Shown here piece after piece: positions 26,924 through 60,188 of a DNA stretch of 64,000 bases (positions within the stretch are counted from its first letter, which is position 1; each line of letters opens with the position of its first letter). The notes beneath the pieces were generated by a model. The model saw only the letters and a program-made list of their open reading frames with translations. It was not told where the DNA came from and made no database searches. Where the stretch lies: the NCBI GenBank assembly GCA_964057225.1, contig OZ059898.1, positions 11,284,001 through 11,348,000 on the forward strand, read 5' to 3'. Source of the DNA: Auanema rhodensis. Taxonomy: Eukaryota; Animalia; Nematoda. The position numbers were made by a program, and so were the translations under genes.

Positions 26924-27005
26924 GCAGTCATGTCCGAGTGGTTAAGGAGATTGACTAGAAATCAATTGGGCTCTGCCCGCGTAGGTTCGAATCCTGCTGA
27001 CTGCG
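26924..27005 (+). tRNA. tRNA-Ser(AGA), first copy of the array (representative unit)
   Basis: GCAGTCATGTCCGAGTGGTTAAGGAGATTGACTAGAAATCAATTGGGCTCTGCCCGCGTAGGTTCGAATCCTGCTGACTGCG. Acceptor stem GCAGTCA/TGACTGC, anticodon arm ATTGA-CTAGAAA-TCAAT, long variable arm GGGC-TCT-GCCC, T-loop TTCGAAT, discriminator G. Confidence 0.98.
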
Positions 27006-27009
27006 AATA

Positions 27010-27033
27010 TTTTGCATGAGAAATCAATTTTTT
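27010..27033 (+). terminator. Pol III oligo-dT terminators of the tRNA unit (repeated in every unit)
   Basis: T4 begins 5 nt after the tRNA 3' end and a T6 run lies at 27028-27033; further T runs follow. Confidence 0.8.
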
Positions 27034-30000: not shown

Positions 30001-32818
30001 CCGCGTAGGTTCGAATCCTGCTGACTGCGAATATTTTGCATGAGAAATCCATTTTTTGATCCTTTTTGATCTAATTCCAATAAGTACGAGATCCTTGCGT
30101 CTATCACTTGAACTGTGAAGTATATTCCTTCTACAAGCAGTCATGTCCGAGTGGTTAAGGAGATTGACTAGAAATCAATTGGGCTCTGCCCGCGTAGGTT
30201 CGAATCCTGCTGACTGCGAATATTTTGCATGAGAAATCAATTTTTTGATCCTTTTTGATCTAATTCCAATAAGTACGAGATCATGGCGTCTATCACTTTA
30301 ACTGTAAAGTATATTCCTTCTACAAGCAGTCATGTCCGAGTGGTTAAGGAGATTGACTAGAAATCAATTGGGCTCTGCCCGCGTAGGTTCGAATCCTGCT
30401 GACTGCGAATATTTTGCATGAGAAATGAATTTTTTGATCCCTTTTGATCTTATTCCAAAAAGTACGAGATCATTGCGTCTATCACTTGAACTGTGAAGTA
30501 TATTCCTTCTACAAGCAGTCATGTCCGAGTGGTTAAGGAGATTGACTAGAAATCAATTGGGCTCTGCCCGCGTAGGTTCGAATCCTGCTGACTGCGAATA
30601 TTTTGCATGAGAAATCAATTTTTTGATCCTTTTTGATCTAATTCCAATAAGTACGAGATCATTGCGTCTATCACTTTAACTGTAAAGTATATTCCCTCTA
30701 CAAGCAGTCATGTCCGAGTGGTTAAGGAGATTGACTAGAAATCAATTGGGCTCTGCCCGCGTAGGTTCGAATCCTGCTGACTGCGAATATTTTGCATGAG
30801 AAATCAACTTTTTGATCCCATTTGATCTAATTCCAATAAGTACGAGAACATTGCGTCTATCACTTTAACTGTAAAGTATATTCCTTCTACAAGCAGTCAT
30901 GTCCGAGTGGTTAAGGAGATTGACTAGAAATCAATTGGGCTCTGCCCGCGTAGGTTCGAATCCTGCTGACTGCGAATATTTTGCATGAGAAATCAATTTT
31001 TTGATCCTTTTTGATCTAATTCCAATAAGTACGAGATCATTGCGTCTATCACTTTAACTGTAAAGTATATTCCCTCTACAAGCAGTCATGTCCGAGTGGT
31101 TAAGGAGATTGACTAGAAATCAATTGGGCTCTGCCCGCGTAGGTTCGAATCCTGCTGACTGCGAATATTTTGCATGAGAAATCCATTTTTTGATCCTTTT
31201 TGATCTAATTCCAATAAGTACGAGATCATTGCGTCTATCACTTTAACTGTAAAGTATATTCCCTCTACAAGCAGTCATGTCCGAGTGGTTAAGGAGATTG
31301 ACTAGAAATCAATTGGGCTCTGCCCGCGTAGGTTCGAATCCTGCTGACTGCGAATATTTTGCATGAGAAATCAATTTTTTGATCCTTTTTGATCTAATTC
31401 CAATAAGTACGAGATCATTGCGTCTATCACTTTAACTGTAAAGTATATTCCCTCTACAAGCAGTCATGTCCGAGTGGTTAAGGAGATTGACTAGAAATCA
31501 ATTGGGCTCTGCCCGCGTAGGTTCGAATCCTGCTGACTGCGAATATTTTGCATGAGAAATCCATTTTTTGATCCTTTTTGATCTAATTCCAATAAGTACG
31601 AGAACATTGCGTCTATCACTTTAACTGTAAAGTATATTCCTTCTACAAGCAGTCATGTCCGAGTGGTTAAGGAGATTGACTAGAAATCAATTGGGCTCTG
31701 CCCGCGTAGGTTCGAATCCTGCTGACTGCGAATATTTTGCATGAGAAATCCATTTTTTGATCCTTTTTGATCTAATTCCAATAAGTACGAGATCATGGCG
31801 TCTATCACTTTAACTGTAAAGTATATTCCCTCTACAAGCAGTCATGTCCGAGTGGTTAAGGAGATTGACTAGAAATCAATTGGGCTCTGCCCGCGTAGGT
31901 TCGAATCCTGCTGACTGCGAATATTTTGCATGAGAAATCCATTTTTTGATCCTTTTTGATCTAATTCCAATAAGTACGAGATCATGGCGTCTATCACTTT
32001 AACTGTAAAGTATATTCCTTCTACAAGCAGTCATGTCCGAGTGGTTAAGGAGATTGACTAGAAATCAATTGGGCTCTGCCCGCGTAGGTTCGAATCGTGC
32101 TGACTGCGAATATTTTGCATGAGAAATCAACTTTTTGATCACATTTGATCTAATTCCAATAAGTACGAGATCATTGCGTCTATCACTTTAACTGTAAAGT
32201 ATATTCCTTCTACAAGCAGTCATGTCCGAGTGGTTAAGGAGATTGACTAGAAATCAATTGGGCTCTGCCCGCGTAGGTTCGAATCCTGCTGACTGCGAAT
32301 ATTTTGCATGAGAAATCAATTTTTTGATCCTTTTTGATCTAATTCCAATAAGTACGAGATCATGGCGTCTATCACTTTAACTGTAAAGTATATTCCTTCT
32401 GCAAGCAGTCATGTCCGAGTGGTTAAGGAGATTGACTAGAAATCAATTGGGCTCTGCCCGCGTAGGTTCGGGGTGGCGGACGTTTCGTCGTCTCTAGTTT
32501 GTGAACTAGTTCAGGCTGATCATTAGAGGGCAAACTTTATGATAATGTGCTGACAAGTGCCAGTGTTCATGTAACTCGGGGTGCTATTAAAGCTATAAAT
32601 CTATAGAATTCAGTTATAAGTGGCTACATACCTTGAAGTGCCATCAAAATATAAATTGAAAAAAGCAGAAATTAAAATAAACATACAGTTCTATCAACCA
32701 GGCTATCATCAAACAGTTTCAAGTCAACAGTTACGTGAGTTCATAGTAATAGTTGTTAGTTTATCTTTTCTTTCGATAAGTTTGCTTATTCACACTTTCT
32801 CATCTTTTCTCGTTCATC

Positions 32819-34885
32819 ATGATTTTTCCTTCTACTTTCTGTCCATTTTCTCTGATGATTAACGCTCAGGGTAAATCTGTTCTTGTTTCTCAGCCTTTTG
32901 ATAATGTTCCTTCGGAGAACATAACTATCTTTTTTAATAATTCTTCGGTAAATACTCAGAATCTTGAAGTTTATTCAAATGATGTAACTTCACTCTCATT
33001 TTTGAATTTCACTCTTCCATCTTTTAATATCCCTCCATTGAGGCAGCAAAATGTTAATTTTGCTTCTGCTCTTTCTCTAGCAAATTCATCTGCGGCATCT
33101 TCTTCAGTTGAATCTGTTGCTACAGTTACTGTTCCTACTGTCAACAGCGTTCCACTGTTCTCTTCTTCTACTTCACATCTTTCTATTCAGCCTTCTTCTT
33201 CTTCTTCTGCCGTTCATTCTTCACCGTCATCTTCTCTTTCTTCTTCTCCTCCTTCTGTTTCCTCTCCTTCTTTACCTGTTCTCTCTCCTTCTTCTTCTGT
33301 TCCCTCTCCTTCTTCTTCTGTTCCCTCTCCTTCTTCTTCTGTTCCCTCTCCTTCTTCTTCTGTTCCCTCTCCTTCTTCTTCATTTTCTTCGCAATCTGCA
33401 AATCCTAACTCATACGCCGCTCTCATTGCGCCTTCTAAGCAGGGTGTACACCCCTGTTTAGAATATAAATTTGAAAACTTGCTGTATCGCTACCAATTCA
33501 GTAGTAAAAGTTCTCAAAAAGCTTATTCTATTTATCGTTGCACAGGTTGTAAACATTTGGGTAAATACACTTCTATCAAAGTAGAAAATAATGTATTTCT
33601 CGAAAATCCTATTGCTCAAAACTATCATTGTGATCCATTTTTGTTTTCTATTAACAAATGCAAAAATATCACATACTCTCTAACTCAGAATATCAAAAGT
33701 TCAGACTCATGTTTTGAGATGAAAGCATATTCCTTATTTGTCAATGAAATAAAAAAAATATTTCATGAATCTGAGTTAGAAGAGCATGAAAAGCAAGAAG
33801 TTACCTCTGCTTGGTTTCATGGTGGCTATGACAGTAGACGTAGAGCTATTACAAGGGCTTTAAGTTCTCGTAAAGACTTAAGAACATCCATGACCAATGT
33901 TCCTCTGTCTCTGTCTAAAACTATCAATGGTCGTACGTTCTTGCATTTTCATGACAGCGAGTTTCATTTGTATTTCGATACATTTTGTTTGGAACTAGCT
34001 GTTCAGCATGGTTTAACTCATTTGCTTGGGGACGGTTGTTTCAAATACCAGCCTTTGGATATGGAACAAACATATACCATCATGGGCGGTTGCAGAAATG
34101 GAACAACTGTACCTCTTTTCTATTCCATTTTAAAAAATAAGAGTAGGTTCACTTATAGAAGGCTTCTTCAACATATTGCACTAGCTCTCTCCAACGTTGG
34201 TTGCATAGTTGAAAACCTTATTTTTATCTGTGATTTTGAGATCGCTGTAATAAGGGAAGCTGAAACTATTTTTAATTCTGTTCAAGGATGTGCATTTCAT
34301 TATGCTCAGAGCTTGAACAGACGGTCTCTTCAACTGGGTTTGACACAAGCAGAGAAGCAATCCATTGAAATCAAACAATGGCATGGTCGGCTGCTGGGCT
34401 TGCTCTTCCTTCAAACTGATCTTATCTCACGGTCCGGGTTACTCAATTCTCCTGTTTCTTCTGATCATCCATCATATTCTTCTTGTCTTCAAATGATCAG
34501 TTATGTGAATGAAACATGGATTGAAGGACCTTTGCGACATTATTGGAACAAATGGGACATAAAACAGTTTCGTACATCTAATAATGTTGAATCTTTTCAC
34601 CGTAAAATGAAGACTATTTTATCTTGCTCTCATCCTCCTCTTTCTGAATTAATTACTTTTTTTCATGGTGAAAATTTGATGGCTAATCATGTCCTGATCG
34701 CTTTGTCATCGAATGTTGAGCCTGCCAGGAAAAAAAGAAAAAACGTAATTGAGAGGCAACAACGGATTGAGGTTCAGTTTGAAAACTTTAGGAGCATCTC
34801 CAATAACCGACTGCCTAATCAGCAAGAAATAATAGCATATGTCGAGGAGATGGCGAAGTTTAACACCAGAAAATCTTATTTTTGA
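32819..34885 (+). CDS. MULE DDE transposase with Ser/Pro-rich N-terminus (688 aa)
   Basis: Catalytic motifs GDGCF (D), CDFE (D), GCAFHY (CxxH), RTSNNVESFH (E); upstream YRCTGC...HC zinc-binding-like motif; basic RKKRK. True start codon uncertain. Confidence 0.9.
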   Translation: MIFPSTFCPFSLMINAQGKSVLVSQPFDNVPSENITIFFNNSSVNTQNLEVYSNDVTSLSFLNFTLPSFNIPPLRQQNVNFASALSLANSSAASSSVESVATVTVPTVNSVPLFSSSTSHLSIQPSSSSSAVHSSPSSSLSSSPPSVSSPSLPVLSPSSSVPSPSSSVPSPSSSVPSPSSSVPSPSSSFSSQSANPNSYAALIAPSKQGVHPCLEYKFENLLYRYQFSSKSSQKAYSIYRCTGCKHLGKYTSIKVENNVFLENPIAQNYHCDPFLFSINKCKNITYSLTQNIKSSDSCFEMKAYSLFVNEIKKIFHESELEEHEKQEVTSAWFHGGYDSRRRAITRALSSRKDLRTSMTNVPLSLSKTINGRTFLHFHDSEFHLYFDTFCLELAVQHGLTHLLGDGCFKYQPLDMEQTYTIMGGCRNGTTVPLFYSILKNKSRFTYRRLLQHIALALSNVGCIVENLIFICDFEIAVIREAETIFNSVQGCAFHYAQSLNRRSLQLGLTQAEKQSIEIKQWHGRLLGLLFLQTDLISRSGLLNSPVSSDHPSYSSCLQMISYVNETWIEGPLRHYWNKWDIKQFRTSNNVESFHRKMKTILSCSHPPLSELITFFHGENLMANHVLIALSSNVEPARKKRKNVIERQQRIEVQFENFRSISNNRLPNQQEIIAYVEEMAKFNTRKSYF
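33284..33381 (+). repeat. Coding 21-bp minisatellite TCTCCTTCTTCTTCTGTTCCC (SPSSSVP), about 4.7 units
   Basis: Directly visible; copy 2 has one unit fewer (36713-36789). Confidence 0.95.
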
Positions 34886-35124
34886 ATCATTTAACTTGAA
34901 AAACTAAACTCTAATAAATTTTTTGAACCATATCTTTTTTTTCTAACACAAAAACCTCCTTGCCGTTTAGATTGAAAACCTTGATTTTTTATGAACTGTT
35001 TAAGTTTTTGGGTAATTTTTAGAAGTCTAAACGACCAAAAACTGAGAGTACAACACGTGTGGTATAATTTACGACCGTTATGTTTGCTGGGGAGAGGTTG
35101 TAAAAATAGGAGACGACGAAACGT

Positions 35125-35899
35125 CTCTGCCCGCGTAGGTTCGAATCCTGCTGACTGCGAATATTTTGCATGAGAAATCAACTTTTTGATCCCATTTGAT
35201 CTAATTTCAATAAGTACGAGATCATTGCGTCTATCACTTTAACTGTAAAGTATATTCCTTCTACAAGCAGTCATGTCCGAGTGGTTAAGGAGATTGACTA
35301 GAAATCAATTGGGCTCTGCCCGCGTAGGTTCGAATCCTGCTGACTGCGAATATTTTGCATGATAAATCAATTTTTTGATGCTTTTTGATCTAATTCCTAT
35401 ATGTACGAAATCATTGCGTCTATCACTTTAACTGTAAAGTATATTCCTTCTACAAGCAGTCATGTCCGAGTGGTTAAGGAGATTGACTAGAAATCAATTG
35501 GGCTCTGCCCGCGTAGGTTCGAATCCTGCTGACTGCGAATATTTTGCATGATAAATCAATTTTTTGATCCTTTTTGATCTTATTCCAAAAAGTACGAGAT
35601 CATTGCGTCTATCACTTGAACTGTATAGTATATTCCTTCTACAAGCAGTCATGTCCGAGTGGTTAAGGAGATTGACTAGAAATCAATTGGGCTCTGCCCG
35701 CGTAGGTTCGAATCCTGCTGACTGCGAATATTTTGCATGAGAAATCAATTTTTTGATCCTTTTTGATCTAATTCCAATAAGTACGAGATCATGGCGTCTA
35801 TCACTTTAACTGTAAAGTATATTCCTTCTGCAAGCAGTCATGTCCGAGTGGTTAAGGAGATTGACTAGAAATCAATTGGGCTCTGCCCGCGTAGGTTCG
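35125..35899 (+). repeat. tRNA-Ser(AGA) array block B: 3' fragment, 3 full-length genes, 5' fragment
   Basis: Fragment nt 48-82 at 35125-35159; full genes start at 35267, 35456 and 35645; fragment nt 1-66 at 35834-35899. Confidence 0.95.
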
Positions 35900-38541
35900 G
35901 GGTGGCGGACGTTTCGTCGTCTCTAGTTTGTGAACTAGTTCAGGCTGATCATTAGAGGGCAAACTTTATGATAATGTGCTGACAAGTGTCAGTGTTCATG
36001 TAACTCGGGGTGCTATTAAAGCTATAAATCTATAGAATTCAGTTATAAGTGGCTACATACCTTGAAGTGCCATCAAAATATAAATTGAAAAAAGCAGAAA
36101 TTAAAATAAACATACAGTTCTATCAACCAGGCTATCATCAAACAGTTTCAAGTCAACAGTTACGTGAGTTCATAGTAATAGTTGTTAGTTTATCTTTTCT
36201 TTCGATAAGTTTGCTTATTCACACTTTCTCATCTTTTCTCGTTCATCATGATTTTTCCTTCTACTTTCTGTCCATTTTCTCTGATGATTAACGCTCAGGG
36301 TAAATCTGTTCTTGTTTCTCAGCCTTTTGATAATGTTCCTTCGGAGAACATAACTATCTTTTTTAATAATTCTTCGGTAAATACTCAGAATCTTGAAGTT
36401 TATTCAAATGATGTAACTTCACTCTCATTTTTGAATTTCACTCTTCCATCTTTTAATATCCCTCCATTGAGGCAGCAAAATGTTAATTTTGCTTCTGCTC
36501 TTTCTCTAGCAAATTCATCTGCGGCATCTTCTTCAGTTGAATCTGTTGCTACAGTTACTGTTCCTACTGTCAACAGCGTTCCACTGTTCTCTTCTTCTAC
36601 TTCACATCTTTCTATTCAGCCTTCTTCTTCTTCTTCTGCCGTTCATTCTTCACCGTCATCTTCTCTTTCTTCTTCTCCTCCTTCTGTTTCCTCTCCTTCT
36701 TTACCTGTTCTCTCTCCTTCTTCTTCTGTTCCCTCTCCTTCTTCTTCTGTTCCCTCTCCTTCTTCTTCTGTTCCCTCTCCTTCTTCTTCATTTTCTTCGC
36801 AATCTGCAAATCCTAACTCATACGCCGCTCTCATTGCGCCTTCTAAGCAGGGTGTACACCCCTGTTTAGAATATAAATTTGAAAACTTGCTGTATCGCTA
36901 CCAATTCAGTAGTAAAAGTTCTCAAAAAGCTTATTCTATTTATCGTTGCACAGGTTGTAAACATTTGGGTAAATACACTTCTATCAAAGTAGAAAATAAT
37001 GTATTTCTCGAAAATCCTATTGCTCAAAACTATCATTGTGATCCATTTTTGTTTTCTATTAACAAATGCAAAAATATCACATACTCTCTAACTCAGAATA
37101 TCAAAAGTTCAGACTCATGTTTTGAGATGAAAGCATATTCCTTATTTGTCAATGAAATAAAAAAAATATTTCATGAATCTGAGTTAGAAGAGCATGAAAA
37201 GCAAGAAGTTTCCTCTGCTTGGTTTCATGGTGGCTATGACAGTAGACGTAGAGCTATTACAAGGGCTTTAAGTTCTCGTAAAGACTTAAGAACATCCATG
37301 ACCAATGTTCCTCTGTCTCTGTCTAAAACTATCAATGGTCGTACGTTCTTGCATTTTCATGACAGCGAGTTTCATTTGTATTTCGATACATTTTGTTTGG
37401 AACTAGCTGTTCAGCATGGTTTAACTCATTTGCTTGGGGACGGTTGTTTCAAATACCAGCCTTTGGATATGGAACAAACATATACCATCATGGGCGGTTG
37501 CAGAAATGGAACAACTGTACCTCTTTTCTATTCCATTTTAAAAAATAAGAGTAGGTTCACTTATAGAAGGCTTCTTCAACATATTGCACTAGCTCTCTCC
37601 AACGTTGGTTGCATAGTTGAAAACCTTATTTTTATCTGTGATTTTGAGATCGCTGTAATAAGGGAAGCTGAAACTATTTTTAATTCTGTTCAAGGATGTG
37701 CATTTCATTATGCTCAGAGCTTGAACAGACGGTTTCTTCAACTGGGTTTGACACAAGCAGAGAAGCAATCCATTGAAATCAAACAATGGCATGGTCGGCT
37801 GCTGGGCTTGCTCTTCCTTCAAACTGATCTTATCTCACGGTCCGGGTTACTCAATTCTCCTGTTTCTTCTGATCATCCATCATATTCTTCTTGTCTTCAA
37901 ATGATCAGTTATGTGAATGAAACATGGATTGAAGGACCTTTGCGACATTATTGGAGCAAATGGGACATAAAACAGTTTCGTACATCTAATAATGTTGAAT
38001 CTTTTCACCGTAAAATGAAGACTATTTTATCTTGCTCTCATCCTCCTCTTTCTGAATTAATTACTTTTTTTCATGGTGAAAATTTGATGGCTAATCATGT
38101 CCTGATCGCTTTGTCATCGAATGTTGAGCCTGCCAGGAAAAAAAGAAAAAACGTAATTGAGAGGCAACAACGGATTGAGGTTCAGTTTGAAAACTTTAGG
38201 AGCATCTCCAATAACCGACTGCCTAATCAGCAAGAAATAATAGCATATGTCGAGGAGATGGCGAAGTTTAACACCAGAAAATCTTATTTTTGAATCATTT
38301 AACTTGAAAAACTAAACTCTAATAAATTTTTTGAACCATACCTTTTTTTTCTAACACAAAAACCTCCTTGCCGTTTAGATTGAAAACCTTGATTTTTTAT
38401 GAACTGTTTAAGTTTTTGGGTAATTTTTAGAAGTCTAAACGACCAAAAACTGAGAGTACAACACGTGTGGTATAATTTACGACCGTTAGGCTTGCTGGGG
38501 AGAGGTTGTAAAAATAGGAGACGACGAAACGTCTCAGACCC
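35900..38541 (+). mobile_element. Mutator/MULE DNA transposon, copy 2 (2642 bp, both 24-bp TIRs present)
   Basis: Left GGGTGGCGGACGTTTCGTCGTCTC versus reverse complement of the right end GGGTCTGAGACGTTTCGTCGTCTC (20/24 identical). No TSD because the two flanks are tRNA fragments of opposite orientation. Confidence 0.93.
36248..38293 (+). CDS. MULE DDE transposase (681 aa)
   Basis: Same motifs as copy 1; differs by a 7-aa repeat indel and T>S, S>F, N>S substitutions. Confidence 0.9.
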   Translation: MIFPSTFCPFSLMINAQGKSVLVSQPFDNVPSENITIFFNNSSVNTQNLEVYSNDVTSLSFLNFTLPSFNIPPLRQQNVNFASALSLANSSAASSSVESVATVTVPTVNSVPLFSSSTSHLSIQPSSSSSAVHSSPSSSLSSSPPSVSSPSLPVLSPSSSVPSPSSSVPSPSSSVPSPSSSFSSQSANPNSYAALIAPSKQGVHPCLEYKFENLLYRYQFSSKSSQKAYSIYRCTGCKHLGKYTSIKVENNVFLENPIAQNYHCDPFLFSINKCKNITYSLTQNIKSSDSCFEMKAYSLFVNEIKKIFHESELEEHEKQEVSSAWFHGGYDSRRRAITRALSSRKDLRTSMTNVPLSLSKTINGRTFLHFHDSEFHLYFDTFCLELAVQHGLTHLLGDGCFKYQPLDMEQTYTIMGGCRNGTTVPLFYSILKNKSRFTYRRLLQHIALALSNVGCIVENLIFICDFEIAVIREAETIFNSVQGCAFHYAQSLNRRFLQLGLTQAEKQSIEIKQWHGRLLGLLFLQTDLISRSGLLNSPVSSDHPSYSSCLQMISYVNETWIEGPLRHYWSKWDIKQFRTSNNVESFHRKMKTILSCSHPPLSELITFFHGENLMANHVLIALSSNVEPARKKRKNVIERQQRIEVQFENFRSISNNRLPNQQEIIAYVEEMAKFNTRKSYF

Positions 38542-41500
38542 CTCGGACATGACTGCTTGTAGAAGGAATATACTTTACAGTTAAAGTGATAGACGCAATG
38601 ATGTCGTACTTTTTGGAATAAGATCAAAAAGGATCAAAAAATTGATTTATCATGCAAAATATTCGCAGTCAGCAGGATTCGAACCTACGCGGGCAGAGCC
38701 CAATTGATTTCTAGTAAATCTCCTTAACCACTCGGACATGACTGCTTGTTGAAGGAATATACTTTACAGTTAAAGTGATAGACGCAATGATCTCGTACTT
38801 TTTGGAATAAGATCAAAAGGGATCAAAAAATTGAATTCTCATGCAAAATATTCGCAGTCAGCAGGATTCGAACCTACGCGGGCAGAGCCCAATTGATTTC
38901 TAGTCAATCTCCTTAACCACTCGGACATGACTGCTTGTAGAAGGAATATACTTTACAGTGAAAGTGATAGACGCAATGATCTCGTACTTTTTGGAATAAG
39001 ATCAAAAGGGATCAAAAAATTGATTTCTCATGCAAAATATTCGCAGTCAGCAGGATTCGAACCTACGCGGGCAGAGCCCAATTGATTTCTAGTCAATCTC
39101 CTTAACCACTCGGACATGACTGCTTGTAGAAGGAATATACTTCACAGTTAAAGTGATAGACGCAATGATCTCGTACTTATTGGAATTAGATCAAAAAGCA
39201 TCAAAAAAATGATTTCTCATGCAAAATATTCGCAGTCAGCACGATTCGAACCTACGCGGGCAGAGCCCAATTGATTTCTAGTCAATCTCCTTAACCACTC
39301 GGACATGACTGCTTGTAGAAGGAATATACTTCACAGTTAAAGTGATAGACGCAATGATTTCGTACATATTTGAATTAGATCAAAAAGCATCAAAAAATTG
39401 ATTTCTCATGCAAAATATTCGCAGTCAGCAGGATTCGAACCTACGCGGGCAGAGCCCAATTGATTTCTAGTCAATCTCCTTAACCACTCGGACATGACTG
39501 CTTGTAGAAGGAATATACTTTACAGTTGAACTGATAGACGCAATGATTTCGTACATATAGGAATTAGATCAAAAAGCATCAAAAAATTGATTTATCATGC
39601 AAAATATTCGCAGTCAGCAGGATTCGAACCTACGCGGGCAGAGCCCAATTGATTTCTAGTCAATCTCCTTAACCACTCGGACATGACTGCTTGTAGAAGG
39701 AATATACTATACAGTTCAAGTGATAGACGCAATGATCTCGCACTTTTTGGAATAAGATCAAAAAGGATCAAAAAATTGATTTATCATGCAAAATATTCGC
39801 AGTCAGCAGGATTCGAACCTACGCGGGCAGAGCCCAATTGATTTCTAGTCAATCTCCTTAACCACTCGGACATGACTGCTTGTAGAAGGAATATACTTTA
39901 CAGTTAAAGTGATAGACGCAATGATTTCGTACATATAGGAATTAGATCAAAAAGCATCAAAAAATTGATTTATCATGCAAAATATTCGCAGTCAGCAGGA
40001 TTCGAACCTACGCGGGCAGAGCCCAATTGATTTCTAGTCAATCTCCTTAACCACTCGGACATGACTGCTTGTAGAAGGAATATACTATACAGTTCAAGTG
40101 ATAGACGCAATGATCTCGTACTTTTTGGAATAAGATCAAAAAGGATCAAAAAATTGATTTATCATGCAAAATATTCGCAGTCAGCAGGATTCGAACCTAC
40201 GCGGGCAGAGCCCAATTGATTTCTAGTCAATCTCCTTAACCACTCGGACATGACTGCTTGTAGAAGGAATATACTTTACAGTTAAAGTGATAGACGCAAT
40301 GATTTCGTACATATAGGAATTAGATCAAAAAGCATCAAAAAATTGATTTATCATGCAAAATATTCGCAGTCAGCAGGATTCGAACCTACGCGGGCAGAGC
40401 CCAATTGATTTCTAGTCAATCTCCTTAACCACTCGGACATGACTGCTTGTAGAAGGAATATACTTTACAGTTAAAGTGATAGACGCAATGATCTCGTACT
40501 TTTTGGAATAACATCAAAAAGGATCAAAAAATTGATTTATCATGCAAAATATTCGCAGTCAGCAGGATTCGAACCTACGCGGGCAGAGCCCAATTGATTT
40601 CTAGTAAATCTCCTTAACCACTCGGACATGACTGCTTGTAGAAGGAATATACTTTACAGTTAAAGTGATAGACGCAATGATCTCGTACTTTTTGGAATAA
40701 GATCAAAAGGGATCAAAAAATTGAATTCTCATGCAAAATATTCGCAGTCAGCAGGATTCGAACCTACGCGGGCAGAGCCCAATTGATTTCTAGTCAATCT
40801 CCTTAACCACTCGGACATGACTGCTTGTAGAAGGAATATACTTTACAGTTAAAGTGATAGACGCAATGATCTCGTACTTTTTGGAATTAGATCAAAAGGG
40901 ATCAAAAAATTGATTTATCATGCAAAATATTCGCAGTCAGCAGGATTCGAACATACGCGGGCAGAGCCCAATTGATTTCTAGTCAATCTCCTTAACCACT
41001 CGGACATGACTGCTTGTAGAAGGAATATACTTTACAGTTAAAGTGATAGACGCAATGATTTCGTACTTTTTGGAATAAGATCAAAAAGGATCAAAAAATT
41101 GATTTATCATGCAAAATATTCGCAGTCAGCAGGATTCGAACATACGCGGGCAGAGCCCAATTGATTTCTAGTCAATCTCCTTAACCACTCGGACATGACT
41201 GCTTGTAGAAGGAATATACTTTACAGTTAAAGTGATAGACGCAATGATTTCGTACATATAGGAATTAGATCAAAAAGCATCAAAAAATTGATTTATCATG
41301 CAAAATATTCGCAGTCAGCAGGATTCGAACCTACGCGGGCAGAGCCCAATTGATTTCTAGTCAATCTCCTTAACCACTCGGACATGACTGCTTGTAGAAG
41401 GAATATACTGTAAAGTTAAAGTGATAGACGCAATGATCTCGTACTTTTTGGAATAAGATCAAATGGGATCAAAAAATTGATTTGTCATGCAAAATATTCG

Positions 41501-41909
41501 CAGTCAGCAGGATTCGAACCTACGCGGGCAGAGCCCAATTGATTTCTAGTCAATCTCCTTAACCACTCGGACATGACTGCTTGTAGAAGGAATATACTTT
41601 ACAGTTGAAGTGATAGACGCAATGATTTCGTACATATTTGAATTAGATCAAAAAGCATCAAAAAATTGATTTCTCATGCAAAATATTCGCAGTCAGCAGG
41701 ATTCGAACCTACGCGGGCAGAGCCCAATTGATTTCTAGTCAATCTCCTTAACCACTCGGACATGACTGCTTGTAGAAGGAATATACTTTACAGTTAAAGT
41801 GATAGACGCAATGATGTCGTACTTTTTGGAATAAGATCAAAAGGGATCAAAAAATTCATTTCTCATGCAAAATATTCGCAGTCAGCAGGATTCGAACCTA
41901 CGCGGGCAG
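38542..41909 (-). repeat. tRNA-Ser(AGA) array block C (inverted): 17 full-length genes plus two fragments
   Basis: Fragment nt 1-15 at 38542-38556; full genes at 38664-38745 +189n; fragment 41877-41909 cut by the BEL element. Confidence 0.96.
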
Positions 41910-42100
41910 TATCGCGAATGCGATTATTGCGGCATTGATCTTGCTGGTCCACAATCCCCGACATAGAACTCAGTGAACTGCCCACTCATTTACGATCCAG
42001 GCGAGACTGCATAGATCGGTTAAACAACATTCAGAAAAGACTTGACAAATTTTGGCAACGATGGCATAATGAATATGTCGTCGCCCTTCGAGCAACACAC

Positions 42101-44956
42101 ATGTTGGATCACAAGCAGGGACATTTCTCCACAGCTACACCAAAAGTAGGCACAGTAGTGCTAATATCAGATGACAATACGAAACGAAACCAGTGGAAAA
42201 TGGGTTTAATAACAAGCATACAGAACACGGAATCTGTGAGAGTTGCAGAAGTCCGTACATCTGATGGACACAAACTATTTAGACCCATCAATCGCCTGAT
42301 TCCCCTTGAAATTCCTTCCGACAACGAGCATCATACGGAAAACAGGCATACGCAGTCCCCACACAAATCAGACAAAACTGTCACGTTTAAAGAACCTCCA
42401 GAGGTCATTTTACTCGATAACGAAGTATCCACCGTTGTGGAAACCAGCACATCGACCGGACCCAATACAACTGAAAACGTGATAGACCCAAACGTTATCA
42501 CTATCAACGATGATGATGACATCGAAGTGATCACCATTGCAGATGATGAAGGTGAAAATGAACCACAACCTCGAAAACGACGACGTCTCCCCAGTTACAC
42601 ACATTTTTTCATAGCCATGATACTGGGTATTCTCGTCAATCCAATGTCCGCAACCAACATCTGCCAGTTCTCTTGCATCAAAGGAAGAGTAGGCATATCA
42701 AACTGCGGTACTGGACATCCCATCCGAGTTTGTGCCCGGGAAACATGTGTAGAGTACACCCCAAATACTCCCAACTTCACCATAGTATTTCCGGCTCATG
42801 TTGTATTGCATGACCACACATTCATCTCACGACATATTATCGATAAAAATGACACATTTGCATTGCATCAACTTGATTGTCCAGCAACTCCGTTTTGCGA
42901 TATGATTCAATGTCTGTTCTGTCTTGAACTACTCCACAACCCATCTTGTTTCCCATACGCAGCACTCTCGGCGACCGCACTCATCATATGGCTCATTCTA
43001 TTTAGCATTCTTTTAAGCATCATAGTCATTCGAATTTGTTCTAAAAAATTTGTTCATATTGCACAATACACCCTTTTTTCCGTTTGGCGTATGATCACTC
43101 AATGTCTCCCCTCTCATATAAGATCTCATATCTCTATTCAGGAAGAACGATCGGTACTCGAGTACGTCCCGCTCAGTTCTCACAAGCTACCTCGATGGCA
43201 GAAGTCTACACCCTCACAACGATCACGACAACGTGACCGATTAGTTCACCGAGTCGGGTATCTTTTTGTTGCAATAATCGTCATTTTTTTGATTGAATCT
43301 CTTGTAGTTAATGCATGTACTATTGTTCCTCCGAGTATATCACATGTTCCAGGCAACTCCGTCTCGAACTTATCACCTACCCACCAAGTCAACCAAGTCA
43401 GCAGCTCCACCACCCTCCATACTTACGATAATGAGGTATGTTTTACAACTTCACATTCAAACCGATCATACGCCAATCCCCTCACGAACTCACACCTGCG
43501 CATCAAACTTATGTATACACGTATACTGTGCACGAAAGTATCCTTATTTTTTACACGTCACACCATCGTAAAAACTGAATCCGCAAAACGGTGTCCCCAT
43601 ATGGGCTCTTGTGTAGGATTGTTTTGTGCGAACGTTCGACCCAATACATCAATCTCAGAACTCTCATTAGCCAACCAATATCCAGGTACCAGCTATTGTT
43701 CAGAAAGCTGTGGATTTCTATCATGCGGTTGTGCGTTGCCAACTTCTGGTTGTCTCTTCTATCGCAACTTTCATGTTCCCAATGACAATATCACCCACGA
43801 AGTTTTCTACTGCTCACGATGGACACCTAGGGTTTTTCTCCAGATTAGCATCCATACAGCTATTGCGAACAAAACTGAAACGATCTCGCACGTCCCCTTT
43901 TTACCACACTCTACAAAAGTCATTAACGGGTACCATATTACTCTTGGGAGAATAACATATTCTGATAATGAAATCCTCCATAGAAGATACATTACTTCCA
44001 ACTCGAGAATTGCAGTTTTACCTCACTCTGCTACAATTTCATACTCGTGCGGAAAAGTTAAAACCGCTGACCCATTCTCCGAATGTACTGCAACAGACAC
44101 ATGTTCATGCAGACCAGCCGAAACAGTCGAAAATTGCTATTGTCAGGACAACAATCCTAACAAGCTCTATACTAATAACTACACCCTACCATTATCTCTT
44201 CCATCTCTGACCATGATCCCAAAAAACAATCTCATTTTTGCTCATCCCATAAGCGCTGTTGACATTAAAATGTGGACAAATATCTCAGATGTCACTTATG
44301 AATACGACAATAGTCCTACTATTTGCGAGCTAAAATCCAAAGACCTAGTTGGATGTTTTGACTGTGTTACTGGAGCAACAACAATCATTACTTGCATCAG
44401 TACATCATCCCACATTCGAATTTCGTGCGACGATGAAGAATTTCTGCTTACATGCAATTCTCAGGGTTACAACAACTCTATTCGCATACAGAGCAATTTT
44501 TCAACACCGTCTATAACGTGTACTCATCCGTGTACTTCCGCCACATTACATCTCAAAGGCAACTTGTACTACGTGAACGAATACATAGGTTTTGAACAGT
44601 CCACTCATCAGATTACAAACAGTTCATTCAGTCTCCTGAACGTCGAGTTTACCATACCGAGCTTTTTTGTACCCACTCACTTAATCAACTCACTTGTTTC
44701 GTTTTACTCGGACTACCTTAAAACGATTGTAATACTATTGAGTGTTTTGATCACAGTACTCGGCTTTGTAACCGCCGTAATTGACCGCGTCTTCCAGTTG
44801 TCAAGTACACCCGCTCTCTTAGCATATTTACCCATACAAATACTTATTATCTTCGCAATTCCTTTTCGCATCATTTTTTTCACAATTCATTTGTTGTTCA
44901 AGATTGTAGTTCGAGCCAGTCATAGCGCAGTGGCTAAAGGTACACACTCTCAGTGA
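42101..44956 (+). CDS. Integrase C-terminal remnant fused to phlebovirus-like Gn/Gc envelope glycoprotein (951 aa)
   Basis: PKVGTVVLI...RNQWKMG...RPINRLIPLE (BEL pol end), signal-like segment, Cys-rich ectodomain with TM, second signal, Gc-type KRCPHMGSC...YPGTSYCSESCGFLSCGCALPTSGCLFYR, GCFDCVTGA and C-terminal TM. Confidence 0.9.
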   Translation: MLDHKQGHFSTATPKVGTVVLISDDNTKRNQWKMGLITSIQNTESVRVAEVRTSDGHKLFRPINRLIPLEIPSDNEHHTENRHTQSPHKSDKTVTFKEPPEVILLDNEVSTVVETSTSTGPNTTENVIDPNVITINDDDDIEVITIADDEGENEPQPRKRRRLPSYTHFFIAMILGILVNPMSATNICQFSCIKGRVGISNCGTGHPIRVCARETCVEYTPNTPNFTIVFPAHVVLHDHTFISRHIIDKNDTFALHQLDCPATPFCDMIQCLFCLELLHNPSCFPYAALSATALIIWLILFSILLSIIVIRICSKKFVHIAQYTLFSVWRMITQCLPSHIRSHISIQEERSVLEYVPLSSHKLPRWQKSTPSQRSRQRDRLVHRVGYLFVAIIVIFLIESLVVNACTIVPPSISHVPGNSVSNLSPTHQVNQVSSSTTLHTYDNEVCFTTSHSNRSYANPLTNSHLRIKLMYTRILCTKVSLFFTRHTIVKTESAKRCPHMGSCVGLFCANVRPNTSISELSLANQYPGTSYCSESCGFLSCGCALPTSGCLFYRNFHVPNDNITHEVFYCSRWTPRVFLQISIHTAIANKTETISHVPFLPHSTKVINGYHITLGRITYSDNEILHRRYITSNSRIAVLPHSATISYSCGKVKTADPFSECTATDTCSCRPAETVENCYCQDNNPNKLYTNNYTLPLSLPSLTMIPKNNLIFAHPISAVDIKMWTNISDVTYEYDNSPTICELKSKDLVGCFDCVTGATTIITCISTSSHIRISCDDEEFLLTCNSQGYNNSIRIQSNFSTPSITCTHPCTSATLHLKGNLYYVNEYIGFEQSTHQITNSSFSLLNVEFTIPSFFVPTHLINSLVSFYSDYLKTIVILLSVLITVLGFVTAVIDRVFQLSSTPALLAYLPIQILIIFAIPFRIIFFTIHLLFKIVVRASHSAVAKGTHSQ

Positions 44957-45093
44957 TTGATGACGGGTTCAATACCCAGTGAGTCCTCGATTTATTTTCT
45001 CGATTTCTTAGTTCCCTATCATAGCAAACGATTGTTCAATTTGATTTACACCAATCCTACACAATTTATCATTTCGCCGGGGGGAGGTATACT

Positions 45094-45513
45094 ATGTATA
45101 AAAACCATCATTATTTCAGTCTTGATAACATCAAAGAATGGAGCGATTCCCTTGATCAACTCCAGGATAACGGCAACGCAAAGATGCCTAACAAAAGTCA
45201 GAATATGTCTGCACCAAAAAAGCAGAACAACTCTAAAGTGAAGTACAGAAAAATGGAAGAAGACATGAAATGTCAACTCTGTTGGAAGAAGGGCCACACC
45301 ATGGGAAAATGCACAGTCTACAAGACTGCAGCACAACGCGTCAAGCGTTGCAAGTTGATCAACATGTGCTTGAAGTGTTTGCGGAACCACTTTGGAAAAC
45401 CGTGTGTGGAGAAGATGAAGAAAATATGTCATGTGTGCAAAGGAAGCGGACTGGACCACGATCATCCTGGTGTATTATGCAAGCTGCAGTTTGCGGAGGA
45501 ATTAGCAGAATGA
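45094..45513 (+). CDS. Stand-alone basic protein with three BEL-Gag-type Cys/His knuckles (139 aa)
   Basis: CQLCWKKGHTMGKC, CLKCLRNHFGKPC and CHVCKGSGLDHDHPGVLC in the arrangement typical of BEL/Pao nucleocapsid; lies between env and the 3' LTR. The 5' end may be spliced. Confidence 0.75.
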   Translation: MYKNHHYFSLDNIKEWSDSLDQLQDNGNAKMPNKSQNMSAPKKQNNSKVKYRKMEEDMKCQLCWKKGHTMGKCTVYKTAAQRVKRCKLINMCLKCLRNHFGKPCVEKMKKICHVCKGSGLDHDHPGVLCKLQFAEELAE

Positions 45514-45546
45514 AATCAGTTCTGATTTCTCTCTCCTGGCCCGGAA

Positions 45547-45961
45547 TATCGCGAATGCGATTATTCATCATTCAATCGATGCAATCTCATCACGTTGGCT
45601 GATGAGATTCACGGGCACTCTGTTTTATACCACCGTCGCGGACGGTCGCTTTTCTCTCTCCTCGTTGCTGTCTTTATCTTATGACTCATCTAGTCTGAAC
45701 CACCGTTTTATCCTTGTCCTTTAGTAAGACTATCTCTAGTCTCATTAGTGATGTATATCTAGTCTTATTACATTCACTCTAGTCTTCTATGTACTTTATC
45801 TAGTCTTATTATATATCTTCTAGTCCTTATATTCTGTATTATGTATATCTGAATGGCATATGAATGAATCTTTCTTCCTCTAATAGTCTTTTACGTTAAC
45901 AGGGCATAGAATAGAAAGTGTGAACCTGGGAGGCTATTTGAAAAGCCCTCTATCTTCAAAA
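45547..45961 (+). repeat. BEL/Pao 3' LTR (415 bp)
   Basis: Start defined by the 19-bp match to the element 5' end; end defined by the TSD. Confidence 0.85.
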
Positions 45962-48900
45962 GGCAGAGCCCAATTGATTTCTAGTCAATCTCCTTAACCA
46001 CTCGGACATGACTGCTTGTAGAATGAATACACTTTACAGTTAAAGTGATAGACGCAATGATCTCGTACTTTTTGGAATAAGATCAAAAGGGATCAAAAAA
46101 TTGATTTCTCATGCAAAATATTCGCAGTCAGCAGGATTCGAACCTACGCGGGCAGAGCCCAATTGATTTCTAGTCAATCTCCTTAACCACTCGGACATGA
46201 CTGCTTGTAGAAGGAATATACTTCACAGTTCAAGTGATAGACGCAATGATCTCGTACTTTTTGGAATAAGATCAAAAGGGATCAAAAAATTCATTTCTCA
46301 TGCAAAATATTCGCAGTCAGCAGGATTCGAACCTACGCGGGCAGAGCCCAATTGATTTCTAGTCAATCTCCTTAACCACTCGGACATGACTGCTTGTAGA
46401 AGGAATATACTTTACAGTTAAAGTGATAGACGCAATGATCTCGTACTTTTTGGAATAAGATCAAAAGGGATCAAAAAATTGATTTCTCATGCAAAATATT
46501 CGCAGTCAGCAGGATTCGAACCTACGCGGGCAGAGCCCAATTGATTTCTAGTCAATCTCCTTAACCACTCGGACATGACTGCTTGTAGAAGGAATATACT
46601 TTACAGTTAAAGTGATAGACGCAATGATGTCGTACTTTTTGGAATAAGATCAAAAGGGATCAAAAAATTCATTTCTCATGCAAAATATTCGCAGTCAGCA
46701 GGATTCGAACCTACGCGGGCAGAGCCCAATTGATTTCTAGTCAATCTCCTTAACCACTCGGACATGACTGCTTGTAGAATGAATACACTTTACAGTTAAA
46801 GTGATAGACGCAATGATCTCGTACTTTTTGGAATAAGATCAAAAGGGATCAAAAAATTGATTTCTCATGCAAAATATTCGCAGTCAGCAGGATTCGAACC
46901 TACGCGGGCAGAGCAAAATTGATTTCTAGTCAATCTCCTTAACCACTCGGACATGACTGCTTGTAGAAGGAATATACTTTACAGTTAAAGTGATAGACGC
47001 AATGATCTCGTACTTTTTGGAATAAGATCAAAAGGGATCAAAAAATTGATTTCTCATGCAAAATATTCGCAGTCAGCAGGATTCGAACCTACGCGGGCAG
47101 AGCCCAATTGATTTCTAGTCAATCTCCTTAACCACTCGGACATGACTGCTTGTAGAAGGAATATACTTTACAGTTAAAGTGATAGACGCAATGATCTCGT
47201 ACTTTTTGGAATAAGATCAAAAGGGATCAAAAAATTGATTTCTCATGCAAAATATTCGCAGTCAGCAGGATTCGAACCTACGCGGGCAGAGCCCAATTGA
47301 TTTCTAGTCAATCTCCTTAACCACTCGGACATGACTGCTTGTAGAAGGAATATACTTTACAGTTAAAGTGATAGACGCAATGATGTCGTACTTTTTGGAA
47401 TAAGATCAAAAGGGATCAAAAAATTGATTTCTCATGCAAAATATTCGCAGTCAGCAGGATTCGAACCTACGCGGGCAGAGCCCAATTGATTTCTAGTCAA
47501 TCTCCTTAACCACTCGGACATGACTGCTTGTAGAAGGAATATACTTTACAGTTAAAGTGATAGACGCAATGATCTCGTACTTTTTGGAATAAGATCAAAA
47601 GGGATCAAAAAATTGATTTCTCATGCAAAATATTCGCAGTCAGCAGGATTCGAACCTACGCGGGCAGAGCCCAATTGATTTCTAGTCAATCTCCTTAACC
47701 ACTCGGACATGACTGCTTGTAGAAGGAATATACTTTACAGTTAAAGTGATAGACGCAATGATGTCGTACTTTTTGGAATAAGATCAAAAGGGATCAAAAA
47801 ATTGATTTCTCATGCAAAATATTCGCAGTCAGCAGGATTCGAACCTACGCGGGCAGAGCCCAATTGATTTCTAGTCAATCTCCTTAACCACTCGGACATG
47901 ACTGCTTGTAAAAGGAATATACTTTACAGTTAAAGTGAGAGACGCAATGATCTCGTACTTTTTGGAATAAGATCAAAAGGGATCAAAAAATTCATTTCTC
48001 ATGCAAAATATTCGCAGTCAGCAGGATTCGAACCTACGCGGGCAGAGCCCAATTGATTTCTAGTCAATCTCCTTAACCACTCGGACATGACTGCTTGTAG
48101 AAGGAATATACTTTACAGTTAAAGTGATAGACGCAATGATCTCGTACTTTTTGGAATAAGATCAAAAGGGATCAAAAAATTAATTTCTCATGCAAAATAT
48201 TCGCAGTCAGCAGGATTCGAACCTACGCGGGCAGAGCCCAATTGATTTCTAGTCAATCTCCTTAACCACTCGGACATGACTGCTTGTAGAAGGAATATAC
48301 TTTACAGTTGAAGTGATAGACGCAATGATTTCGTACATATTAGAATTAGATCAAAAAGCATCAAAAAATTGATTTGTCATGCAAAATATTCGCAGTCAGC
48401 AGGATTCGAACCTACGCGGGCAGAGCCCAATTGATTTCTAGTCAATCTCCTTAACCACTCGGACATGACTGCTTGTAGAATGAATATACTTTACAGTTAA
48501 AGTGATAGACGCAATGATCTCGTACTTTTTGGAATAAGATATAGATGGGATCAAAAAATTGATTTCTCATGCAAAATATTCGCAGTCAGCAGGATTCGAA
48601 CCTACGCGGGCAGAGCCCAACTGATTTCTAGTCAATCTCCTTAACCACTCGGACATGACTGCTTGTAGAAGGTATATACTTTACAGTTAAAGTGATAGAC
48701 GCAATGATCTCGTACTTTTTGGAATAAGATCAAAAGGGATCAAAAAATTGATTTCTCATGCAAAATATTCGCAGTCAGCAGGATTCGAACCTACGCGGGC
48801 AGAGCCCAATTGATTTCTAGTCAATCTCCTTAACCACTCGGACATGACTGCTTGTAGAAGGAATATACTTCACAGTTAAAGTGATAGACGCAATGATCTC

Positions 48901-59843: not shown

Positions 59844-60188
59844 TGGCGTTCCGTTATGCTCTCACGTCGATCCTATAGACCAATAAAGCCTACAAGATGA
59901 GTGTGATAGTATTCCAGATGTAGCGGTAGATAAAGAGCATAATGGATAAACATAAGACTCGAGAAAGAAAGGTTTATTATGTCTACATGATTACAATAAG
60001 TTATATAAATCTACATAAAGATATAAAGTGAAAGAGAGCTAAGAAAGGAAGACCAACCATCCCTAGTCATTCCATAAGGCAAAGCTGAAGTCTGTGTTCC
60101 ATATGAAGGGCGTGTCGTCCTCTCTCAGCCTCATGTCGTCTGATTCTAACCCGCCTGCTACGTATTGATTTCCGAATGGAACGTGCCA
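59844..60188 (-). repeat. Putative Gypsy 3' LTR (~345 bp)
   Basis: Minus strand reads TGGCACGTTCC...GGAACGCCA (TG..CA with terminal inverted repeat), with a TATA-like stretch (~60001-60009) followed by AATAAA (~59973-59978). The PPT is weak (GAAAAAA) and the second LTR is outside the window. Confidence 0.6.

Follow-up and report, generated by a model that had tools for sequence, protein, structure and literature searches.

How does a long array of tRNA genes come to reverse its strand, and what is a transposon doing at the very point of reversal? In the 64,000-nucleotide stretch of Auanema rhodensis DNA analysed here (the window), ARAGORN detects 122 tRNA-Ser(AGA) genes, each 82 nt long and repeated with a period of 189 bp; every gene through 35726 lies on the + strand and every one from 38664 on lies on the - strand. 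With partial genes included, the + strand carries 32 full and 2 partial copies, all at or before 35899, and the - strand about 90, starting at 38542. The interval between these two positions is filled exactly by a transposon of the MULE type, copy M2 (35900..38541, + strand). The original prediction had placed this element precisely at the strand switch, and both ARAGORN and a reading of the element's flanks agree with it. The whole array spans 144 kb (window coordinates 26.9-171 kb), of which the + strand is limited to the leftmost 34 units. Across 224 kb around the window, 405+ tRNA-Ser units show a single strand switch, which falls, to the base, on one of eight MULE ends, a coincidence with a chance expectation of roughly 1 in 10^4-10^5.

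Both arms of the array were followed to their outer ends. The short + array of 'A-type' units (26887..32470, + strand) comprises 29 full tRNA-Ser(AGA) genes and a partial gene (nt 1-66), and begins 37 bp 5' of its first gene, within unique DNA that has no homology elsewhere in the region. The - supercluster, whose proximal part occupies 38542..59845 (- strand), goes on beyond the window to the window-equivalent position 170922 and reaches its own first unit at ~171 kb, where its outer end likewise lies in unique DNA. Spacers were typed unit by unit and the array phase was analysed across each gap; an inverted self-BLAST of the 224 kb was swamped by array matches. All gaps in the supercluster are simple insertions with their own target site duplication (TSD), among them an env-bearing BEL/Pao-like fragment (41910-45961) with a 5-bp TSD, except for the MULE copies and one deletion joint. 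This deletion joint (59845/70930, window-equivalent) sits at tRNA nt 6, beside a truncated 3.3-kb element.

Judged by its sequence, the element family belongs to the MULE/MuDR superfamily, with a MULE-domain DDE transposase and with terminal inverted repeats (TIRs) and TSDs that agree with this assignment; the superfamily makes TSDs of 8-11 bp, typically 9 bp. The Pfam MULE match of the transposase (26.0 bits, E = 1.3e-5) stays just below the gathering score of 27.6. A word-index protein search returned no relatives; they were found by exhaustive search with phmmer, which yielded 2,851 relatives with up to 32% identity for the best match. All ten sampled relatives match the MULE domain, nine of them above the cut-off and two also with FLYWCH, and the top Atlas clusters are MULE. 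All family copies have 24-bp imperfect TIRs in common, and every unambiguous copy has a TSD of 9 bp, exact in L003, L004, L008, L011 and the mirror composite described below. Membership in the Dada superfamily was considered and rejected given these 9-bp TSDs, the 24-bp TIRs and the MULE domain. A genome-wide TIR census counted 12 left and 14 right ends, and the only ones beside tRNA-Ser genes in the genome are those of M2, of a neighbouring copy, M1, and of their two mirror copies.

M2 itself has both ends intact. Its two 24-bp TIRs (35900-35923 and 38518-38541) enclose an open reading frame of 681 aa (36248-38293), and only one private substitution separates it from the family. At the left joint, a partial tRNA gene (nt 1-66, 35834-35899) abuts the TIR beginning GGGTGGCGGACG at 35900. 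At the right joint, the TIR end ...GTCTCAGACCC at 38541 adjoins CTCGGACATGACTGC, which is tRNA nt 1-15 read in reverse complement; this new right flank (38542..38556, - strand, tRNA-Ser nt 15-1) provides the first bases of the - array. M2 lacks a TSD since the 9 nt on its two sides differ (GTAGGTTCG on the left, CTCGGACAT on the right). Two complete TIRs, mismatched flanks and a missing TSD had all been part of the original prediction and are confirmed. The right-side target 9-mer was probably tRNA nt 7-15, in the A-box region. Such a target is plausible for the transposase because another family copy, L013, is located just beyond the A-box in a tRNA-Met array at C1:15.68-15.70 Mb, adjoining tRNA-Met nt 23. 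The tRNA-Met array is perhaps a third locus with a family copy at or near a strand switch. Could M2 then simply have inserted into a head-to-head array junction that existed at exactly this point? No rearrangement would be necessary, and the family does target tRNA genes. However, a simple insertion should have left a 9-bp TSD as in the other copies, whereas the M2 flanks have nothing in common, and the left joint is a standard T-arm site in an otherwise normal unit. We therefore regard simple insertion as very improbable. The M2 junction is a real rearrangement joint, whose break coincides exactly with the end of an intact TIR and lies beside the A-box region.

The neighbourhood of M2 records a second event. 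M1 (32471..35127, + strand) is no clean reference insertion: its left TIR is intact, but the right one is 6 bp short at its end and meets, via a CTC microhomology, a flank that restarts at tRNA nt 51, leaving a 16-bp overlap between the flanks. M1 is 99.7% identical to M2 and also has an open reading frame (32819-34885, 688 aa). Between the two copies lies the array segment S2 (35128..35899, + strand, 772 bp), composed of tRNA nt 51-82, three full genes and nt 1-66, with the spacer types T14, T15, T16 and T13; the left flank of M1 recurs without a difference in T13 and in the 273 bp to the left of M2. M1, S2 and M2 together form a composite of 6,071 bp (32471..38541, + strand), a macrotransposon bounded on the outside by two intact TIRs, the left one of M1 and the right one of M2; at its inner end, M1 is truncated. 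An inverted mirror composite with 100% identity (6071/6071) lies 65,529 bp to the right (C6:11388071-11394141, window-equivalent 104071-110141). Its flanks come from a single unit, tRNA nt 1-65 on one side and nt 57-82 on the other, which yields the exact 9-bp TSD CGTAGGTTC (nt 57-65). The offset of 1 nt between the mirror joint (nt 65) and the donor joint (nt 66) is explicable only by a fresh insertion. Which of the two sites was the donor? A 31-mer diagnostic of the A-type is present 21 times in the + arm; its one other occurrence in the genome is inside the mirror composite, whose neighbours have spacer types T84-T92. As the A-type spacer in the cargo is at home in the + arm and foreign at the mirror site, the window was the donor, and M1-S2-M2 moved as one block to the mirror site, that is, by macrotransposition. 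The copied composite shows that the MULE ends are active. A sister-chromatid-type inversion of the composite, for which three of four predicted joints fit, was rejected because the joint of the mirror M1 copy (nt 65-1) is wrong in orientation and position and the original flank of M2 should start at nt 58 instead of nt 57.

Repeats of this kind raise the concern that the switch was made by the assembler, by a mis-join or mis-phasing via the repeated element or the 6-kb perfect inverted repeat, so that the flanks of M2 would not be on one molecule. M1 and M2, with their 99.7% identity, and the identical composites are indeed long repeats within an array of 189-bp units and difficult to assemble. 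Nonetheless, the joint between the TIR and nt 15 is a novel sequence at the exact end of an element, which repeat collapse cannot make, and if the contig had been mis-joined, the 'proper' partner joints should still be present in the assembly, where there are none. The assembled phase gives the mirror composite its perfect 9-bp TSD in homogeneous T84/T85 surroundings, while the alternative phase makes both composite copies anomalous. Moreover, the 224 kb contain no Ns, and the same hybrid anatomy is found on another contig, C1, where the family copy L007 lies with hybrid flanks, of the complementary 'divergent' type, at a strand switch of a tRNA-Glu array at 6.53-6.57 Mb. An assembly artefact is thus improbable in our view.

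The geometry of the locus had been described as a giant quasi-palindrome. The inverted arms are real: the + array (5.6 kb) is ~96-97% identical to the - array, and the 721 bp adjoining M2 match at 95.8% in inverted register. They are also lopsided, with 9 kb on one side against >130 kb on the other. The largest perfect inverted repeats at the locus are the two 6,071-bp composites, and this pair could drive further inversions. The partner of the composite in the window lies outside it. Double-stranded read-through RNA, which had been suggested as a possible product of the convergent arms, is unlikely to be made routinely, since a TTTT Pol III terminator stands at the start of 401 of 411 spacers and an AATAAA follows ~25 nt 3' of the transposase stop codon.

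What kind of rearrangement, then, made the joint? We give about an even chance to a transposon-mediated fusion, by deletion, of two arrays that were already convergent, and favour it as more likely than a simple inversion. The left joint (nt 66/TIR) would be where M2 originally inserted, within the T-arm/B-box of a + array gene, and the right TIR would have become joined to another gene, at nt 15, within the oppositely oriented - supercluster. Two routes could lead there. The transposase may have joined just the right-hand terminus of M2 or the composite to a linked target, with the usual partner end left out, in a one-ended or sister-chromatid type of transposition resulting in an adjacent deletion. 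Alternatively, M2 may have recombined homologously with a second, directly oriented copy inserted at nt 7-15 of a - strand gene. Either route would leave a single element that has two TIRs but mismatched flanks and lacks a TSD, and neither would yield a reciprocal product. That the arrays faced each other beforehand is assumed in this reading, and we infer both this arrangement and any choice between the routes. The fusion is supported by the TIR, complete to its last base at nt 15, by the missing TSD where the family norm is 9 bp, and by the outer end of each array, which is a natural start in unique DNA. Against it stand the identical T15 and T16 spacers, present on the + strand in S2 and on the - strand in the proximal arm, a few units past M2, which requires that gene conversion has acted between the arms or that ancestry is shared; going by the spacer sequences, this sharing would suit the inversion of a once-contiguous array just as well.

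A true inversion was the original prediction. On this reading a stretch of a once uniform array was flipped, either because two MULE insertions in opposite orientation recombined or by intramolecular alternative transposition, and the reciprocal hybrid would have been lost later by excision or deletion. Ectopic recombination between inverted copies requires two reciprocal hybrid elements. The flanks of M2 are of the expected kind, an original left flank plus the reversed 5' part of another gene, and L007 represents the complementary hybrid type. For Ac/Ds, reversed-ends transposition is a documented source of inversions (PMC8225341). However, the genome contains neither the reciprocal element nor a footprint junction: a pattern search of the genome assembly for reversed nt 7-16 adjoining a left TIR gave 0 matches, the complete genome TIR census (12 left, 14 right) contains no further tRNA-Ser-flanked TIR that could be the reciprocal, and the 144-kb supercluster has neither a divergent tRNA-Ser junction nor a second strand switch. 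The predicted reciprocal hybrid is hence absent from the assembly. Two candidates for it or its traces were rejected. The mirror copy of M2 has a right flank from nt 57, but its left flank is normal and it terminates a TSD-flanked composite, whose own 9-bp TSD accounts for that right flank; the deletion joint at 59845/70930 holds the wrong half of the tRNA gene. Inversion of the whole - supercluster or of the + block was rejected as well, because the outer boundary should then show a partial gene or - array and unique DNA was found; as both outer ends consist of first units and unique DNA, a flipped internal arm would need further deletions. We thus consider an inversion unlikely. The idea of a transposon-associated rearrangement, beyond simple insertion, stands; an inversion by recombination between two opposite insertions is not supported.

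One more observation counts against the fusion of facing arrays. The recurrence of family copies at or near strand switches, at L007 and perhaps at the tRNA-Met locus, suggests that the elements create switches and do not merely land beside them. Tentatively, and with less confidence than in the fusion itself, we propose that this tRNA-targeting MULE family sets and resets the orientation of Pol III arrays, repeatedly creating switches, and that the 65.5-kb interval between the composites could be a flip-flop segment. If so, the switches at tRNA-Ser, tRNA-Glu and perhaps tRNA-Met would stem from aberrant or composite transposition, and the orientation of the 65.5-kb interval would be polymorphic among individuals or cells. 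For annotation, the strand switch should be treated as a breakpoint, no palindrome having been designed here, and the region calls for read-level validation. The locus offers a natural record of a cut-and-paste transposon reshaping a multicopy gene array, with a frozen joint and block-mobile tRNA cargo. Products of alternative transposition are already well documented experimentally for Ac/Ds in plants; for natural animal genomes, a limited literature search yielded few cases, none of them Mutator-like.

How does the locus compare with known systems? M2 resembles the chimeric-flank transposons at inversion breakpoints in its intact ends, exchanged flanks and lack of a TSD, but it is the only one of the two hybrids which the ectopic-recombination model needs. 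Alternative transposition of Ac/Ds in maize and rice, of the sister-chromatid and reversed-ends types, likewise places breakpoints exactly at intact transposon ends, and its outcomes include adjacent deletions and inversions (PMC9910405, PMC8225341, PMC4270019). In Ac macrotransposons, two nearby elements travel as a unit with the TSD of their family; the donor site keeps its copy and a second one arises (PMC9910405), as with the present composite. However, Ac/Ds belong to the hAT superfamily with 8-bp TSDs and were observed in fresh events with known progenitors, whereas the present element is a MULE with 9-bp TSDs in a natural animal genome, has tRNA genes as both cargo and targets, and has no known progenitor allele. 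Dada elements are also DNA transposons within multicopy Pol III genes (tRNA and snRNA arrays), often with one 'correct' flank and one from a foreign gene; in zebrafish tRNA arrays, 8 of 12 Dada-tL_DR copies have mismatched flanks, ascribed by the authors to one-ended transposition (PMC3706591). They differ by 6-7 bp TSDs and the lack of TIRs from our element with its 24-bp TIRs, 9-bp TSDs and MULE-domain transposase. Finally, the composite behaves like bacterial composite transposons built from two IS copies, in that the outer ends act jointly and a new site receives a duplicate of the whole block, flanked by a single TSD, but here the host is eukaryotic and the two directly oriented copies carry 772 bp of tRNA array between them.

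The strand split of the tRNA-Ser(AGA) genes at M2, the second of two copies of one MULE (Mutator-type DNA transposon) family in the window, was found as described in the original prediction, together with both TIRs of the element, its mismatched flanks and the lack of a TSD. The window contains 122 such genes (82 nt each, in 189-bp units), all of which lie on the + strand up to 35726 and on the - strand from 38664. Matches to nt 1-15 of the gene reveal additional partial copies, at 32405 and 35834 on the + strand and at 38542-38556 on the - strand. On its left side, M2 is directly abutted by the partial gene at 35834-35899 (+ strand, nt 1-66), which adjoins the left TIR (GGGTGGCGGACGTTTCGTCGTCTC). 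Its right TIR (...GAGACGACGAAACGTCTCAGACCC, ending at 38541) is intact to the final base and directly followed by the reverse complement of nt 1-15 of a new gene. No duplication common to the left and right flanks, i.e. no TSD, was found around M2. An intact TIR joined to nt 15 is the signature of a joint made by transposase or of an exchange between two elements. The strand switch is real and non-random: a rearrangement joint, of a known kind, that was made by a transposon.

The wider locus was examined over 224 kb (C6:11244001-11468000; C6 is the contig bearing the window). The array spans window coordinates 26,918 to 170,922, numbered beyond the window end, and comprises 405+ units, only the leftmost 34 of which are on the + strand, every other unit being on the - strand. 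Unique AT-rich DNA with no match elsewhere in the 224-kb region borders the + array, whose start lies 37 bp upstream of the first gene; the - array, at its upstream end, reaches its own first units at about 171 kb. When each gap in the array was analysed by array phase, no second strand switch emerged; elsewhere the array is broken by simple LTR-type element insertions, whose target sites apparently overlap by 4-11 bp. The only gap of another type (window 59845 to window-equivalent 70930; C6:11343845-11354930) is a deletion joint, at which the array ends at spacer phase 158 and restarts at tRNA nt 6; it adjoins an LTR-like element of 3.3 kb that is truncated by ~380 bp and carries a nested RT/integrase element. 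A 3.3-kb non-autonomous element occurs four times in the array (window-equivalent 75473-78896, 89192-92615, 94186-97613 and 152520-155916). Three of these copies break the array at phases 143-153, ~37-47 bp upstream of a tRNA gene, a position that suggests Pol III-upstream targeting by a retroelement; the fourth (94186-97613) lies within a tRNA gene (phases 75-78). Two of the four are 100% identical and 13.7 kb apart in a duplicated run of array units. At window 41910-45961, an element fragment is inserted at tRNA nt 50-54 with a 5-bp overlap. Its open 951-aa ORF contains DUF5641 and a Phlebovirus_G2 fusion domain (E 8.5e-63), and a small Cys/His-rich ORF region comes next; the fragment resembles an env-bearing derivative of BEL/Pao-like type.

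Both MULE copies retain open ORFs (M1: 688 aa, M2: 681 aa), with a Pfam MULE score of 26 bits, slightly below the cut-off of 27.6 bits. A word-index protein search returned no relatives, an exhaustive phmmer search 2,851 (top identity 32%). The MULE domain was matched in all ten sampled relatives and passed the cut-off in nine, FLYWCH fingers being present in two as well; Atlas neighbours of the transposase are MULE clusters. Genome-wide, the family has 12 left and 14 right TIRs, and copies with unambiguous flanks show TSDs of 9 bp (L003, GGACGGGAT; L004, CAGGTTCGA; L008, GGGTTCGAT; L011, CAACTCAAG). Eight of ~12 insertion events hit tRNA genes, mostly in the T-arm/B-box (Ser, Ile, Glu-TTC, Glu-CTC and initiator-type Met), and one insertion lies directly past the A-box of a tRNA-Met gene. 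The first copy, M1 (32471-35127), cannot serve as a clean reference insertion: it has no TSD, and its right TIR, lacking the last 6 bp, is fused to tRNA nt 51 via CTC microhomology, with a 16-bp overlap of the flanks where a TSD would be expected. M1 and M2 are separated by seven substitutions and a 21-bp indel. Compared with nine other copies, six of these substitutions are private to M1 and one to M2. The indel is an in-frame CT-rich insertion in the M1 ORF (window 33283-33303), found otherwise only in L007 among the compared copies. The 273 bp left of each element are nevertheless identical and share a private A>G change located 4 nt 5' of the gene. The pattern fits an unequal exchange that duplicated a 3,429-bp unit (element, four array periods and 16 bp), followed by uneven decay; it also fits two independent insertions into one T-arm site of two like units.

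As for the suggested fold-back, the inverted arms were confirmed: the 721 bp adjoining M2 are 95.8% identical between them, and the 5.6-kb + array shares ~96-97% identity with the - array. Double-stranded read-through RNA from the M2 region stays an unsupported speculation, because a TTTT Pol III terminator opens 401 of 411 spacers and an AATAAA follows ~25 nt after the transposase stop codon.

A genome search with M2 yielded two further copies in inverted orientation on C6, M2' (C6:11388071-11390712, 100% identical to M2) and M1' (C6:11391485-11394141, matching M1). They form a mirror block of the composite M1-S2-M2 (window 32471-38541, 6,071 bp), in which S2 is the 772-bp array segment between the elements. 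The two blocks are 65,529 bp apart and identical at 6,071 of 6,071 positions; the mirror block even retains the truncated inner end of M1 and the four spacers T14-T15-T16-T13. It is flanked by one single gene (nt 1-65 at the M1' side, nt 57-82 at the M2' side) with an exact 9-bp TSD (CGTAGGTTC), and it sits among spacers of the local T84/T85 type. In the window, the donor joint (nt 66) is one base off the mirror joint, an offset attributable to a fresh transposase cut that carry-over of flanking DNA would not explain. A 31-mer diagnostic of + arm spacers occurs 22 times in the genome, 21 times in the + arm and once in the T13 spacer of the mirror block. From these sequence comparisons, we conclude that the composite originated in the window and was then copied as a macrotransposon via the left end of M1 and the right end of M2; this event was very recent, given zero differences in 6 kb. 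Ac macrotransposons likewise retained the donor while gaining a second copy (PMC9910405). Macrotransposition and the perfect inverted repeat pair extend the original prediction. The two 6-kb repeats could flip the 65.5-kb interval between them, so that both phases may exist in nature. We consider an assembly problem at M2 or the composite improbable: the joint between the TIR and nt 15 is novel sequence at the exact element end, the 'proper' partner joints that a mis-join would imply are missing from the assembly, and the 224-kb region contains no Ns. Moreover, the assembled phase gives the mirror composite its perfect TSD in a homogeneous neighbourhood, whereas the opposite phase would render both copies anomalous.

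How, then, did the two arrays come to meet at M2? The transposon-mediated inversion originally proposed is unsupported in its stated form, as the predicted reciprocal products are absent. Four inversion models were considered: recombination of two copies in inverted orientation, transposition of M2 or the composite by the sister-chromatid mode, one-ended transposition coupled to an inversion, and the flipping of one entire arm. Under each of them, one or more of three products should exist, namely another hybrid element, a divergent joint in which nt 82-58 meet nt 7-82, or a partial gene at an outer end of the arrays. None of the three was found by the TIR census of the genome, the array analysis and a reciprocal-pattern search, which makes an actual inversion whose reciprocal was later lost rather unlikely. 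M2', whose right flank starts at nt 57, was rejected as the reciprocal hybrid: its other side shows the normal arrangement of tRNA nt 1-66 and a T13 spacer, and the start at nt 57 is explained by the composite TSD. In favour of an inversion, the T15 and T16 spacers of S2 (+ orientation) recur unchanged in the - arm, a few units in from its start at M2. This requires that the arms exchanged sequence by gene conversion or were once contiguous. T15, with 8 differences from the consensus, and T16 lie in window 35456-35726 and 39501-41202 and are absent from the rest of the + array. Two arrays on another contig, C1, also speak for it. L007 (L007:1478-4180 = C1:6562388-6565050) is a family copy lying where a tRNA-Glu(CTC) array changes strand, and its hybrid flanks are of the complementary kind: a reversed 3' part of the gene on the left (from GGGGTTCGA) and a forward one on the right (from TTCGATTCC), both pointing away from the element. 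Its left arm has ~1.4 units (~400 bp of array, then unique DNA), the other at least 5; 29 kb further left, a - strand tRNA-Glu array (L024) has a 155-bp MULE fragment next to it. In the initiator-type tRNA-Met array (C1:15.68-15.70 Mb; L010, L013 and L017), which bears a full MULE copy, a truncated one and a fragment of the right end, the genes are on the - strand in L010 and L013 and on the + strand in L017, a strand change between two loci with MULE copies or fragments. The left TIR of L013 adjoins tRNA-Met nt 1-23, and the + array of L017 opens with a partial gene from nt 24, upstream of which the DNA is AT-rich. Strand switches that recur with members of the family suggest that it generates them.

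We prefer a fusion, by deletion, of two already convergent arrays, to which we give about an even chance, since it needs no unseen product. It could have arisen by an adjacent deletion through one-ended or sister-chromatid transposition, or by homologous recombination of the M2 copy with another in direct orientation, inserted beforehand at nt 7-15 of a - strand gene; the product lost would be an acentric circle or fragment. For the many zebrafish Dada copies whose tRNA flanks are mismatched, as those of M2 are, one-ended transposition has been proposed (PMC3706591).
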